A stretch of DNA of 56,086 nt, the filler included, from Sluysia triapertura (taxonomy: Eukaryota), in assembly GCA_046118255.1 (NCBI GenBank). It is 4 parts of 4 records of this genome, joined end to end, with 100 filler letters (N's around TTAATTAATTAA, not from the genome) between each part and the next. Parts side by side here need not be neighbours in the genome. Positions count along the whole stretch, not along the records: positions 27,140 to 38,615 come from JBJNIA010184346.1; 3 more parts are not named here. One strand, given 5' to 3'. The notes under the pieces were generated by a model. That model had not been told where the DNA came from. It did not search any database and saw only the letters and a list, made by a program, of their open reading frames with translations. A program made the translations under genes and the position numbers. Positions 29,708-35,700 of this stretch are shown here, piece after piece. How positions within the stretch are numbered: the stretch's first letter is position 1; each line of letters begins with the position of its first letter.

Positions 29708-32700
29708 TTCATTATCTGACTCAACCAAAACTTGATCGTATTCTGATAATGCAACTAGAAACATTATACTAGTTACATTCTCAAAACAGTGAATCCATTT
29801 GCGTCTTTCTGATCGTTGTCCCCCTACGTCAACCATTCTAAAAGAAAACAAATTTATAAATTATTATGAAATAATAATAATAAATTATAAGAAATAATTA
29901 TTTCTTATTTTGAAAATATTTTACTGTTAAATTTCACTTAGTAATGCTGGCTCATAAAAACCACTAATATGGCTCCTAGTATAGATTTTCAATAAAATTA
30001 TTATTTATTCGTGCAATCATATAGACATAATTATATACTTTTCTCTTTACCAAAGTAAAAAATAATCAACTTAAGTATAAACAAACTAAATACCAAAGAT
30101 CTTTAATATCGAATCTTGCTAATTTATGTGACAAACTATTACCTTAATTGCCCTTTAGAAAAGATGCATCATAATGATTTAAATAGATGGACTCTTTTAG
30201 AATGTTATATACAAAGTACACAAAATCTCACTAAGAAAGAGAAACAAGGTTGCATGCGAATAAAAATAGATTGTGCTTTTTATGTTGGTTATTAACAATA
30301 TTTAGGAAAACAGAAAAACGTTTAATGAAAATGTGGTGGCCAACCTATTACTTTAACAAATTTTATTTTTATCGTAACATAACAAAATCACTCTTCACAA
30401 CATTTCACAACTCTTTATATTTGCAAAATTTTATGACATCAAAATCATCAATCATACGCTTAAAAATTAATTTAAAACATTTTAATATAATTCAATATCG
30501 CACATTCCATAACATTCTAACTATTTTCCGTCAAAACCTTTTTTCATATTTTATTTCTTCAGATCCATTAAAACCATTTTACATACCTCAAAACATTTTA
30601 AATTAATAATCTGTCAACATCCAAATCTATCAATCTATATCTAAAAACTCTTAAAACATTTATTCATGATTTTACAACGCTAGAATCACAATTACATCTC
30701 AAACTATCAAATATATATCTTAAAATCAATCCAAAATATTTCAAATCGACAATCCTCAACATTCAATCTCTAATATCACTGAAAACATTAAATTAACACT
30801 TTGAAACCATTTTAGACATTTTAATCAAAATAACATTCCTTTAACATTTTAGTTATCAATCATTTCCTTCAAACATTATCTTATCGGCTCTTCCATAACG
30901 CATATTTTGGTAATTACCGTACAAATCTCTTTGAAAGGAAATAATAAATATAACCAATATTTCGAAAGCATTTGAAGAAAGAACTAAAAACGATTTTATT
31001 TTAAGGCATTAAGTTAAAGGAATTTTAGTTTATAATAAATCATTTTAAAGAATTTTAGTTAATTTTAGTCTAAGAAATAATTTTGTATTTTAAAAGGAAT
31101 AAAGATAAAAGATCATGTTAAGAATAAAAGACAGCAATGAAAGATTTATGTTTTGATTTTTGTTTTATTTCAAGGCATTAAGTAAAAAATTTTAATATTT
31201 TGAGAAATAAGAATTATAAAAAACATATCGGGTGAATATAATAAAAAGGAATTTGTTTTTATTTAAATTATCATTATTATTATTATTATTATTATTATTA
31301 TTATTATTATTATTATTATTATTATTATTATTTTATTCATTATTATAATTGTTTTTATCATTACTAGCTAAAACCAAAATAAAATTAATTGTGCAGTAGC
31401 TACTACTATCAGTAATGACAGTATCAATTCGTATTTACTATCCGCTGTCATTATTGATAGTTACTTGGTCGAGACACATCATTACTCTAGCTATGCTTTC
31501 ATTGGATGTCCAACCAGAATTGCTATTTTTATTGTTGTCTCTCGTTCTGATCGAACAACCAGTGATAGTTGTTTACTGCAAATCAAAAATGAGTTAATTT
31601 AATGTAACTAGACACACATATAGACAACAATGCAACAAATTAACTTAAACATTAATAGAAAATTTTTATCGTGTTTTGTACACATATTAACATTAAAAAA
31701 GAGACCAATAATTATTGACAGCTTAATTTTAAAGAGTAACATCGTTATCACAGTTAAAGAGAAAAATAATTATTAGCAAAAGTTAAAGATTTGCTGTTTG
31801 AGCTGAATATTCTATCTATTTAAATGTGTAAATGGAATATTAACGAGTATAATACTAAACACTATTGTAAAAATTTAGAAGCATATGTGAAAAGCAAAAA
31901 ACAATTTAATCTATGTTTTAATTACTTCAATTATGAAATATTGTTAAGTATTTATATCAATTTTGAATCTATTTTTTCATAAAGTAATTGTTTATAGAAA
32001 CTATGTTATCTATACGTGAATTTTTGGATGATATTTCGTTAAAATTTATATTAATTGTACAATTAAATGAATTCGAGTTTAAAATATTAGAATTCGTTAA
32101 AGAGCCAATTATGGAACCTAAATTCACGAAATGAATCGACACTCGCTCTAGGATCAAATTGCGTATTAAAATTAGTAGACAGACTAAATGTAAAACAAGA
32201 CGTTATAAATTGGCTGAAATATCTTATGACTATCAGATAAGGCGATTCAATACCAATCTTCTCAATGCTTCAATTTATATTGTGATGAAAAGGTATGAAT
32301 CTATACATGTCCACATCGATGTCGACTCGTATTTTATGACTAATAAAAGTATATCATTGGTAGAAAGTAAGGCAAAAGCGAAAACAAGGATTTTCAATTT
32401 AAAACACTACTACAAATTAACTTTTTATTACAATAAAAAGGATGAAAATATTTGAAATTTAATTTTAAACTTTCTAACACAATAAAATGTACAAAAATTA
32501 CATAAAGTTTTATTTAACATAAATATGTTTGTTAGATTTACTGTCCTCAATAATGTTCCGCTTGTGCCATAAGTTTCGCTACCTACAAGAAAATAAAAAA
32601 ATGTCGTTAACATCAGTACAAAAATTATTTACTTTGAGTTCATTGATACTTGTATTGTCCTTATCCATGTTCGGATCTGATACTCCAAGAGTTCTCAAAA

Positions 32701-35700
32701 CGTTTCCGATTCGAAATAAATGATGGAAGTATTTTGCGAAGTCAGCATTAGGAATCACTAGTTCATCGACTATATGAGCGCATTTACAACTGCTACCATA
32801 TCTCATACAATTTCCTTTTTGGTCGGTATTGAAAAGGCACATTCTCCTTTTAATGTCATTACTAGGACTTGTATATAGCCTGTGAGTTTGAAATAAATTA
32901 CATTGTAATTGGTCTGATGATATTATGTCATCTTCATTCTTTCCCATCATTTCCTTTATCCTTTAATAATGTTAAGGGATTAATTAATTCATTTGTTTCT
33001 TCGGTAGCTTTCAAATATCTTATCAAGGTGCGAAAAAGATGCCAATCATTGAAAGTAATATGAAGTTCATTACGTAATTCAAACAGATCGCAAACGATCA
33101 ATACTAAACCATTTAAATTAATTTCACGAATTTTCTCTTGATGATTAGAAATATTATCAGAACGTATTACTTTGAATTGCCCCACATTGCAAATAACGTT
33201 GTTCAAGGTAATTTCGCTCAGAATAAATGATGAAAACAAATCATTAATATCTTGAATATACCGTTTAAAACTTTTAGAAGTAATTTTACATTCATGACTT
33301 GAATCTGAACTAGGTGAAGTGTTATTTTTTAGAGTCTGAATTTTTATTGTCGAATATCGATTTAATTTATTTGATAAACAAAGAATCGAATTAAATAAAC
33401 GTATTGGTAATGTCATTTCTAGATAATCATTTGTTAGATTTATGATAATTTTGAGCGACTCCAACATCGTATTTTCATAGTAGCTCTCTGGTCGTTCAAT
33501 TAGGCAGAACTTTTTCTATTTGATTTCGTACCCATTATACCCTTTTCTGATCATATCGATTAACATATAAACAGTTTCTTCGAAAGCTTTTCCAGCTACT
33601 ACAAGCATGTGATGCTTAAATTATACATCAACATTTTTAATAGGAGCATAATCTAATAACTTCTTTAACTGTCGAAATTCTTCCATTGCCTTTAGACCGT
33701 CTTGGTGTATATATTTAGTTGAAACACTTTTATAGATTGTTATATTATAAGTCAAAGGCATTACGACACAAACGGGCAACGGTAGGTTTTATCATAGCGT
33801 TACTTGTACCCACTTTATCGATTCTGTGATTTGTAGTTAATAATTTTTCATATTTTTCTCCAAAATATTCGCATTTAGGAATTTTACTAAAACAGAACTA
33901 CGAATTCATTTAAAATACAAAAATCAAGCCTCCAAGGACCATTAATAGTGATACAATAAAAAATGATAAATTAAATAATTTTTAAATTTTTATTGATTAC
34001 TGCAAAATTAGTTTTTTTGTATTAAATGATATCATTATTTTAAATTTTGTTTTCTGAATATTAATTTTTTAGTTCATTTAAATCAAGCTTTTCAAATTCT
34101 ATTTTTAGCTGACAAATTCCCGATAATTAATATTGAATAATAATTTTTACTGCTAATTAGCAACTCTTGATTGGCCGTCCAACCAGAGGTATTGAGATGA
34201 TAAAAACAGTAATGCTAGCTCTAGTTGGACGGCCAATAGAAATACACGAAACAAACAACAGACGAACAAACCACACTGTGATGAATTATAAATGCAAATT
34301 AAAAATGTCACTGCTGATGATGGCAGCTACCAAGTTAATTCGATTCATTTTGGGTTAAAATTAATGATAATAATAATAATGCAGTGTTATTATGATTATT
34401 ATTAAAATCACAAAGTCTTATTTCTTTAAGTATTACACATCATCTTTCTTAACATATTTGAGTTTAGTTCTTTGGAATACTTAAAAATAAGATTGTTTTA
34501 AGGTGTTATAGTGATGCTAATGTTTTAAGAAAATGCGTAACCCCTTTTAATATAAATTTTAACTGCTGTTTTCTGGTTTTACGTGAATACTATTTAATAT
34601 TTCTTACTGAAGAGATATTAGAATGTAGAAGGTTATGACTTAAGTACTTTGAAATAGTATAAATGTTAAAAATAGATAAATGTACACTGATATTTTGAAA
34701 GAAAGTAATGTTTGCTTGTTAAAATTTAACGATAACGAATGATGAATTTAAAATGTTCGAATTAATTTGAAGGTGTCGGGTAAATAATTTCGAATGTGGT
34801 TGTAGTTTGGTTATGAAATGTCGAGTAAAATAATTTTGATGAATCTCTTAATGCAAATTGATGGTATTGGATGTCGTTGTGGTTTGTATGTTATGAGATT
34901 ATGGATTTAAATTGACTTTAGCGGATGAATTGTTTCAGTGAATGTAGAGGAGATAAATATGAGAATGTTAAAATGTTAGAGAGTATGGTTTTATGTACAT
35001 TATGGTGATTTAGTTTAATATTGTTTTATGTTGATTTTAGAATGTAAACGGTAGATTTTGAGATGTTTTGAAAAATGGAAGTTGATTTTGGTGGATGTGA
35101 AAAGGAATAAGGTATAAAAACGGTTGTGACGAATTTTACAAATTTGTTATGTAATGTTAAAAAGAATATGATTTTAATTATTTTTATATTGATTGTGAAT
35201 TTAAAATGTGAGTTGTAGATTTTGGAGGTGAATGTTATATTGAAGGAGATTTATGTAATAAAAATGTTTTTAATGAATTTCTGAAAATGTGTGATATAAA
35301 TTTTTAATAAAATTTGTTAAATATGTTGGCCACCACAATAAGATATTTTCGTCTAAAATATACAACCTCATGCTCATGAATACAAGTATTATAAATATGG
35401 TGTCTCTTTGGAAGATCACAGATTTGGTAGAAGCTGCATCTATGCCCCGATTTTTTCGAAATTAGCGATCTTTTTAGTTCAACATCAAACCTCAATGATC
35501 ATCATTTTAGAACTAATGCCTTATTGCCAAATATCAATTCATCACTATTATCAATACTTGAAGAATCAACAGGACTTTAAAATAATATTAAATTTTGATT
35601 CAATTTACTCTAATTTAAACCAGATCTTATATTTACATTATTTATATTTCTTTAGAATTCTCAGAATTTCAATTTACAATATTATGAGGTATACTCGGAA

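Follow-up and report, generated by a model that had tools for sequence, protein, structure and literature searches.

The host intron and the inverted arms

What is the origin of the inverted structure that occupies much of a long intron in a Gq-type G-alpha gene of Sluysia triapertura, and does it hold two copies of one gene, as an earlier note on this DNA proposed? The window (56,086 nt with filler, joined from four parts of assembly GCA_046118255.1) contains the structure within the stretch at 27,140 to 38,615, which comes from JBJNIA010184346.1. Four minus-strand G-alpha exons (38243-37944, 37912-37758, 37642-37514 and 29837-29708), each searched separately with the Pfam G-alpha profile PF00503, match it in order at profile positions 1-92, 104-142, 145-181 and 185-228, and the introns between them are 31, 115 and 7676 nt long. 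The longest of these (29838-37513, minus strand) holds a repeat unit of 5006 nt spanning 30332-35337, hereafter the cassette, in place of the bounds 30090-35480 given in the earlier note. The cassette makes up 65% of the intron, which agrees with the earlier description of a cassette filling most of a 7.7-kb intron, where the gene's other introns were put at 31 and 115 nt; however, the following intron, downstream, spans 2.5 kb or more, so this gene has more than one long intron.

The left arm (30332 to ~31610, plus strand) aligns colinearly with the right arm (35337 to ~34120, minus strand), each being ~1.25 kb long, with ~55% identity over 1130 columns. Their local alignment score is 62. Shuffling the whole sequence or blocks of it gave 22.8-26.7 (sd 3.4-4.0), the highest score in 400 shuffles that preserve composition was 45, and a control comparison against reversed sequence gave 32. 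From the outer to the inner end of the arms, the segment z-scores are 9.9, 5.1, 2.6 and 8.3, and in the left arm an inner patch (31371-31437, plus strand) is conserved, pairing with 34356-34289 (minus strand) at z = 8.3. The AT block, previously listed as common to both arms, is not significantly similar between them (z = 2.6; score 18 on the diagonal versus 12-19 off it). In the G-poor tracts described below, an off-diagonal score of 36 was obtained versus 53 and 30 on the diagonal, so part of the arm similarity reflects shared motif content. No further arm pieces were found in the remaining 6.5 kb of the stretch. The view that the two halves are colinear, diverged reverse complements is therefore valid for the ~1.25-kb arms (62 versus ~26 in shuffles) but not for the 2.5-kb core between them, which is unduplicated and unrelated between its two sides (z = 0.7 for inner DNA). 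A long dsRNA hairpin formed by the arms is implausible because they are only 55% identical, and an assembly artefact was rejected since near-perfect arms would then be expected.

Tips, subterminal motifs and CCAAT-type elements

The inverted similarity starts abruptly at an exact 13-mer, TGTGGTGGCCAAC, located at 30332 (plus strand) and 35337 (minus strand), and there is none in the flanks outside it (z = -0.6). The left tip (30332-30367, plus strand) consists of this 13-mer at 30332-30344 and a 16-mer, TTTAACAAATTTTATT, at 30352-30367, and the right tip (35306-35337, minus strand) bears the same two words in inverted orientation at 35337-35325 and 35321-35306. Over the outermost 36 nt, the tips agree at 31 of 32 aligned bases and the only gap is a 4-nt indel, so that the two ends of the cassette form terminal inverted repeats of the kind found in Class II (TIR) DNA transposons. 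Both ends begin with (A/T)TGTGG. The flanking sequences are ...TTTAATGAAAA| and |ATAAGATATTT..., in which inspection revealed no target-site duplication of 2-10 nt, even when the ends were allowed to shift by a few bases. A short ORF ending in VVAN, listed earlier as a possible feature of both arms at these positions, was rejected as a conserved ORF: similarity is lacking upstream of the 13-mer, and the 4-nt indel directly after the 13-mer shifts the frame of the 16-mer that is conserved next. A search of metagenome contigs with the tip pattern gave 0 matches.

Moving inward, the strongly G-poor tract noted before is evident in each arm, with 3.4% G at 30345-30900 (plus strand) and 3.6% G at 34600-35325 (minus strand). 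The motif AACATT occurs 10 times in the left tract versus 0.9 expected and 8 times in the right tract versus 1.2 expected, an enrichment of about 10-fold, and it points inward in both. Its offsets from the tips coincide between the arms at 67/69 and 179/179. The motif is dispersed without a clear period; TRF found no tandem repeats in these tracts, and in autocorrelation the only peaks, at around 60 and 120 nt, were weak. Such enrichment resembles subterminal binding-site arrays. The (TTA)n run reported for both arms was also recovered at colinear positions, as an (ATT)32 microsatellite at 31267-31363 in the left arm and a (TAA)6 counterpart at 34362-34380 in the right.

At the inner end of each arm there is a CCAAT-type 18-mer, ATTGGATGTCCAACCAGA, found at 31501, 34170 and 34220, where 0 are expected by chance; a palindromic CCAAT element in both arms is thus borne out. 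The left element (31501-31567, plus strand) comprises the 18-mer and a degenerate inverted partner (~14/19 bases by eye), for which no fold was predicted. The right element (34170-34238) comprises two inverted 18-mers forming a 19-bp stem with a 30-nt spacer, and its predicted fold as DNA has an energy of -18.8 kcal/mol (z = -6.6). The first ATG (33761) of the gene described next is ~410 nt downstream of this element.

A single broken gene in an unduplicated core

The sole recognizable gene in the core is an intronless minus-strand gene of ~400 codons at 33788-32579. Two in-frame stops and one frameshift interrupt its coding sequence and leave four open pieces: 33788-33624, followed by TAA at 33623; 33620-33519, followed by TAG at 33518; 33515-32937, with a SAM_KIDINS220-like domain; and, after a frame change within 32962-32937, 32962-32582, with an UNK-like CCCH finger and the terminal stop at 32581-32579. 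Short introns do not account for the interruptions, because by eye none of the GT...AG candidates around the stop at 33623 has a length divisible by three, and the frame change has no GT nearby. The two stops in 409 codons fit ~2-3% neutral substitution. GC content is 0.31 and GC3 is 0.27 in this gene, versus 0.32 and 0.22 in the Gq exons.

The pieces were used separately in homology searches, without any read-through sequence. The SAM_KIDINS220 domain (PF23307) scores 66 bits, above the Pfam gathering cut-off of 27. The earlier note had called for a structure prediction, and the resulting model confirms a SAM fold for this region, with block-mean pLDDT of 79-97 over residues ~90-180 and best Foldseek matches that are SAM domains (TM-score up to 0.77), none of them at E ≤ 0.001. 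The UNK-like finger (PF25427) passes its cut-off at the borderline (31.4 versus 31.1 bits), retains the ligands C-x9-C-x6-C-x3-H, and aligns to Unkempt PDB 5elh at E = 0.01 (positions 97-133 of chain 5elh_A, which is 145 residues long). Unlike Unkempt, with its six fingers and RING domain, the protein here has a single finger and lacks a RING; the label "RING?" formerly attached to the gene finds no support in Pfam, which gives only the SAM_KIDINS220-like domain and the one finger. The product was probably an RNA-binding or scaffolding protein.

Host proteins of flatworms are the nearest to the SAM domain, which is 40-54% identical to, for example, VEL14030.1 of Protopolystoma xenopodis and VZI54220.1 of Spirometra erinaceieuropaei; unlike the gene here, none of the 114 SAM relatives has a CCCH finger. 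Among 1.84 billion representative proteins, the best match to the 193-aa SAM piece is 54% identical and confined to the SAM domain, and there is no second copy or close paralog of this piece. The ~190 residues before the SAM domain have no match (the exhaustive search being limited to the 193-aa piece). Word searches among proteins of 0.55-1.75 times the query length were blank for the SAM piece, for the left-core ORF and for a spurious arm ORF taken as a proxy for other copies of the cassette. The ESM Atlas likewise gave no usable match for the SAM piece and just sub-threshold CCCH clusters for the C-terminal piece.

On the left side of the core, an open frame at 31988-32455 (plus strand; 154 codons with one TGA at 32132) is longer than any in 500 shuffles. 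It matches no family, lacks relatives, does not resemble the right gene and is possibly not a gene. This frame and the SAM-CCCH gene point inward and meet at ~32455-32579. They had been interpreted as paralogs, which was rejected by every comparison: blastp between the two frames gave E = 0.27, tblastx and blastn of the left core (31580-32560) against the right gene gave nothing, and the Smith-Waterman score of the two proteins is 30, below the shuffle mean of 38. Because the core is not duplicated, a symmetric palindrome is ruled out. Arms of palindromic amplicons contain paralogous genes and are usually near-identical through conversion. The cassette is similar to such amplicons in having two inward-pointing arms around a short center, but its inner genes are not paralogous and its arms are 55% identical. 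Neither an old palindromic amplicon nor two mobile units, each with its own CCCH gene, as had been suggested, agrees with inversion of the ~1.25-kb arms alone, one recognizable gene in the core and no paralog on the left; nor do paralogous genes in both arms, the mark of an inverted gene duplication, occur here.

Origin of the cassette

Diverged arms with near-identical tips around a single broken gene point to a long-inverted-repeat relic rather than a duplicated gene pair. Our preferred reading, to which we give a probability of about 0.4, is that a long-inverted-repeat DNA transposon, non-autonomous and carrying a gene, was inserted fairly recently and is now decaying. In this form, the earlier idea of a mobile unit that carries non-transposase cargo but shows no transposase is retained, as one element instead of two. 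The region 30332-35337 would be one 5.0-kb element inserted into the Gq-alpha intron; each ~36-nt tip would lead into ~1.2 kb of partly similar subterminal DNA with a G-poor tract, a microsatellite and a CCAAT-type palindromic element, and the unique 2.5-kb core would carry the host-like SAM and CCCH-finger gene, read inward from the right arm. The palindromic element ~410 nt upstream of the first ATG would be the likely promoter. In favor of this reading, the inverted similarity is significant and colinear and starts abruptly with nothing outside, and tips of 31/32 identity versus 55% elsewhere are the pattern of transposon ends. The inward-facing AACATT enrichment shared by both arms and the unduplicated core favor it too. 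The stop count (~2-3% substitution) and the tip differences (one substitution and one indel per 36 nt) suggest a recent event, both being rough clocks. Pfam searches of nearly all open segments of at least 45 aa within 30301-35495 (E up to 1) revealed no transposase or transposon domain. Lacking its own transposase, the element, if it moved, would have moved in trans. Against this reading, a recent cut-and-paste insertion is expected to retain a target-site duplication, and none was found; nor did the scanned segments yield a transposase gene or remnant, another attribute of Class II elements. The SAM piece without a second copy, the 55% arm identity and the off-diagonal matches in the G-poor tracts also count against it.

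A host-side inverted duplication, in which the 1.2-kb upstream region of the nested gene was copied to its far side and the copies diverged without any mobile element, is a possible but doubtful alternative. It would fit the repetition of the arms around a single gene, the lack of a target-site duplication and transposase, the flatworm host affinity of the SAM domain and the Gq-like GC and GC3 values; moreover, the gene must have been constrained nearly throughout the decay of the arms to 55%, as a host gene would be. However, neutral decay should be even, yet the outer 36 nt are almost unchanged, and the best-kept part lies ~1.2 kb from the gene, at the edge of the repeat and without obvious host function. 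The orientation-specific AACATT arrays are left unexplained as well.

It is rather unlikely that the arms are two independent old copies of a ~1.25-kb dispersed repeat that came to lie in opposite orientation around a nested host gene, the symmetry being coincidental. An identity of 55% is what two copies each ~25% from a family consensus would show, the unit covered by both arms is the same, with the 13-mer at one end and the CCAAT-type element at the other, and the two sides of the core are unrelated to each other. This explanation, however, requires that both copies be full length and equally old, that their 36-nt ends stay near-identical despite 45% divergence elsewhere, and that they be placed 2.5 kb apart and pointing inward, and no other arm piece lies in the rest of the stretch. 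The remaining explanation, that base composition and low complexity in AT-rich DNA produced the mirror symmetry without true homology, could draw on the low overall identity, the AT block and the off-diagonal scores of up to 36, but is refuted by the shuffle and reversed-sequence controls, the exact 13-mer and 16-mer at matching offsets, the 18-mer with 0 chance expectation and the colinear patches at z = 8-10, and we regard it as highly improbable.

Returning to the transposon reading, a more specific version of it holds that a transposase-less cassette ferries a host-derived SAM-CCCH RNA-binding gene, and maybe a second unrelated gene, in a flatworm-like genome, each arm having an inward CCAAT-type promoter. 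This version, which we consider improbable, would make the cassette an animal equivalent of those Pack-type or MuDR-style elements that carry genes. If further copies exist, an animal DNA transposon would be carrying a host-type gene other than a transposase and expressing it from promoters in the arms, with a bearing on gene movement and duplication in AT-rich flatworm-like genomes. It would also bear on intron growth, because the cassette forms 65% of its intron while the neighboring introns are 31 and 115 nt. If this is the only copy, the cassette would amount to an old inverted duplication next to an ordinary nested pseudogene and would matter only locally. No known RNA families or tRNAs were found.

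Comparison with known transposons

Galileo, a Foldback-like long-TIR element of the P superfamily in Drosophila, has a conserved terminal 40 bp within inverted repeats of ~0.8-1.6 kb, and many of its copies, ~4-5 kb in total, lack transposase and have an unrelated spacer between two arms that are usually 97-99% identical within a copy (PMC4168063). The cassette is similar in its long inverted arms with AT-rich segments, conserved tips, lack of a transposase, unrelated spacer and size. In contrast, its ~1.25-kb arms are 55% identical with a motif dispersed without clear period, it lacks the 7-8-bp target-site duplications of Galileo and any THAP or P-type transposase remnant, its spacer is a host-like gene, and the taxon differs, the best protein matches of that gene being from flatworms.

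The maize Mutator element MuDR is ~4.9 kb long and has two non-homologous genes that converge from promoters in its two inverted ends. Similarly, the SAM-CCCH gene (minus strand) and the left-core frame (plus strand) point inward. The cassette differs in having neither a MULE transposase domain nor a 9-bp duplication, and its left frame, lacking family or relatives, may not be a gene.

The end of the C. elegans transposon Tc1 reads TA|CAGTGCTGGCCAAAAAG (primer, PMC3680223). The cassette holds no remnant of a DDE or HTH transposase, its tip is without the CA of the conserved CAGT start, and its left flank is AA instead of TA. The TA duplication, CAGT-type ends and DDE transposase of Tc1/mariner elements were not recovered here. 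On the other hand, 10 of 13 positions match between the Tc1 end and the cassette tip in a hand alignment on the TGGCCAA core, a post-hoc comparison that serves as a lead only, and on the right side the cassette has TA where Tc1 has its duplicated TA.

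Inverted-repeat cassette in an intron of the host gene

The minus strand of the piece at 27140-38615 (JBJNIA010184346.1, G+C ~24%) bears the 5' part of a G-protein alpha subunit (Gq-alpha) gene. Four exons on this strand, each searched singly, at 38243-37944, 37912-37758, 37642-37514 and 29837-29708, match positions 1-92, 104-142, 145-181 and 185-228 of the Pfam G-alpha profile, and their order is that of the profile positions. Going by the splice sites visible in the sequence, the introns measure 31, 115 and 7676 nt, and because no further G-alpha exon was found in 27140-29707, the intron after the exon at 29837-29708 is at least 2.5 kb; the gene has two tiny introns and then at least two long ones. 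Within the 7676-nt intron lies a genuine inverted-repeat cassette (30332-35337, 5006 nt) that encloses a single broken gene, with a left arm at ~30332-31610 (+) and a right arm at ~35337-34120 (-). The earlier note had described 30090-35480 as an inverted duplication with two paralogous CCCH-type genes; the inverted repeat stands, and the gene pair does not.

Local alignment of 30320-31560 with the reverse complement of 34130-35350 scores 62 and spans 30332-31334 against 35337-34358, whereas whole-sequence shuffles and block shuffles preserving local composition have means of 22.8-26.7 (sd 3.4-4.0, maximum 45) and a reversed-only control scores 32. The z-scores are 9.9 in the outer 300 nt, 5.1 in the next 300 nt, 2.6 in the AT block and 8.3 in the inner part with the CCAAT-type element; no similarity is seen in 480 nt compared outside the shared 13-mer (z = -0.6) or between the inner regions 31620-32520 and 32520-34100 (z = 0.7). 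When segments are scored against each other, the diagonal of the matrix reads 53, 30, 18 and 32 and one off-diagonal cell reaches 36; the G-poor tracts are therefore alike out of register too. Arm identity is 55% over 1130 aligned columns (MAFFT) and very uneven: patches at 30566-30615 and 31371-31437 show 64-76%, and the remaining stretches show 37-50%, the level of optimally aligned unrelated AT-rich DNA. In the left arm only, two 25-mers (30994-31018 and 31163-31187, 92% identical, 169 nt apart) lie at its extra length and are probably a local duplication.

The tips, i.e., the outermost 36 nt of the arms, share 31 of 32 aligned bases with one 4-nt indel, and form a block of a 13-mer, TGTGGTGGCCAAC, followed by a 16-mer, TTTAACAAATTTTATT. 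A short ORF ending in VVAN, once proposed at each arm's outer end, is a DNA-level motif: the sequence upstream is dissimilar, and the indel puts the next conserved block out of frame. Other proposed landmarks were confirmed. The inward-reading strand of the G-poor tracts has 3.4% and 3.6% G, compared with ~11% in the surrounding intron; microsatellites, (ATT)32 and (TAA)6, occupy colinear places; and the CCAAT-type 18-mer ATTGGCCGTCCAACCAGA, with 0 occurrences expected by chance, is found in both arms, at 31501 (2 mismatches), 34170 (exact) and 34220 (minus strand, 1 mismatch). The right-arm pair folds as DNA into a stem of 19 bp across a 30-nt spacer (-18.8 kcal/mol, z = -6.6); in the left arm the second half-site has decayed and the folding is lost. 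The hexamer AACATT is enriched about ten-fold in the G-poor tracts (10 vs 0.9 expected and 8 vs 1.2 expected), is oriented inward without exception in both, and first occurs at matching distances from either tip (67/69 and 179/179); no clear tandem period was found in these tracts.

Open frames of the core

The gene in the core, named SAM-CCCH after its two domains, is one long interrupted minus-strand frame that starts at 33788, has its first ATG at 33761 and ends in a stop at 32581-32579. Its pieces are 33788-33624, then TAA at 33623; 33620-33519, then TAG at 33518; 33515-32937 (193 codons); and, after a frame change somewhere within 32962-32937, 32962-32582 (127 codons). By eye, no GT...AG of suitable length would remove the first stop as an intron, and the surroundings of the frame change are free of GT. 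The gene is broken as assembled.

The 193-residue piece matches SAM_KIDINS220 (PF23307, 66 bits vs cut-off 27), and the C-terminal piece is a borderline match to the UNK-like CCCH finger (PF25427, 31.4 bits vs cut-off 31.1) and aligns to an Unkempt CCCH finger (PDB 5elh). An AlphaFold model with 39 relatives as input has block-mean pLDDT of 79-97 across residues ~90-180, and SAM domains, of PHC3 and Scm, head its Foldseek results (TM-score up to 0.77, none at E <= 0.001); the 90 residues ahead of the SAM-like domain are modeled as two long helices at low confidence. An exhaustive profile-free search of 1.84 billion representative proteins found 114 relatives, in the SAM-like domain only (best 54% identical), and no near-identical paralog of the 193-aa piece. 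Because a CCCH finger is missing from all 114, the SAM and CCCH pairing is unusual. The named matches are flatworm proteins, from Protopolystoma and Spirometra, a weak hint that the source is flatworm-like; the closest SAM-domain relatives are P0001 (467 aa, from a Logan contig, AT-rich in style) and P0004. In G+C (0.31) and GC3 (0.27) the gene resembles the Gq exons (0.32 and 0.22).

On the plus strand, the left-core frame at 31988-32455, a possible gene, has 154 codons with one stop and exceeds the length in all 500 shuffles; neither a Pfam match nor relatives in a word search were found for it. That the two inner genes align as paralogs is refuted: tblastx and blastn of 31340-32560 against 32480-34360 return nothing beyond the trivial stretch that both ranges share, blastp gives E = 0.27, and in Smith-Waterman alignment the left frame and the right protein score 30, less than the average of 38 over 500 shuffles. 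Since the two inner frames are not paralogous and VVAN is a DNA-level motif, the repeat unit is two arms around a unique core of ~2.5 kb. AATAAA, a common motif in DNA so AT-rich, occurs on both strands at 32482-32487 (+) and ~32512-32507 (-), ~30 and ~65 nt past the two inward-facing frames, and two possible transcripts would thus end within ~30 nt of each other.

Age and origin of the cassette

In simulated neutral substitution of the gene's 409 codons, two stops arise on average at ~2-3% change and more than eight at 10%. The stop count of the SAM-CCCH gene fits ~2-3%, and its loss of constraint is therefore recent. The arms differ by 45%, and if they had been identical at the start and decayed neutrally to this level, an unconstrained gene between them would be obliterated. 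Either the gene belonged to the host and stayed under constraint for almost all of the repeat's existence, or the arms were never identical apart from the tips and a few patches; the latter fits more simply. Over 36 nt the tips differ by a single substitution and a single indel, in agreement with the gene's decay of a few per cent, and such uneven conservation, peaking at the extreme ends, is the pattern of transposon families.

We tentatively favor, at a probability of about 0.4, a single non-autonomous long-inverted-repeat element at 30332-35337, which would have the host-like SAM-CCCH gene as cargo, reading from the right arm inward, and may have entered the Gq intron fairly recently and now be decaying. 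Against this reading, the ends show no target-site duplication at any size between 2 and 10 nt, where recent cut-and-paste should have left one; the arm identity is far under that of known long-TIR elements; and Pfam scans of cassette open segments of ~45 residues or more gave no transposase or mobile-element domain. The tip pattern is absent from metagenome contigs (DNA pattern search in a collection that excludes this genome). An inverted duplication of the 1.2-kb region upstream of the SAM-CCCH gene would account for the missing duplication and transposase; we consider it unlikely, and it leaves the near-perfect tips and the oriented motif arrays unexplained. Still less likely is a dispersed 1.25-kb repeat that is present as two independent copies; this would account for the 55% identity but require both to be full-length, to face inward and to have near-identical ends. 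Base composition and chance alone, as the source of the arm symmetry, are excluded by the shuffle controls and are hardly credible.

The cassette is probably the remnant of a transposon, of a general kind already known; it would gain importance if further copies turn up, and is otherwise modest. In MuDR, two unrelated genes converge from promoters in its ends. The cassette resembles it in organization but is without a MULE domain. The long inverted repeats of Galileo are conserved in their terminal 40 bp, and many of its copies consist of a pair of arms flanking an unrelated spacer (PMC4168063). The Tc1 end is TA|CAGTGCTGGCCAAAAAG (PMC3680223). By hand alignment the cassette tip has 10 of 13 bases in common with it, TGGCCAA included, and of the two sides only the right has a TA where Tc1 would have it; this post hoc resemblance is given little weight.

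The same intron also contains a (TA)n microsatellite of ~19 units (36046-36083). The stretch 36140-36600, A-rich and with higher G+C (0.31) and AT skew up to +0.29, is without a long ORF or Rfam match. Just beyond the right tip and reading away from the cassette, 35360-35908 (+) has 183 stop-free codons without a Pfam match; within it an ATG/TTG ORF of 166 aa begins at 35408. I, L, F, Y and N abound in this stretch, which in length far exceeds every other open stretch in the neighboring intron DNA.
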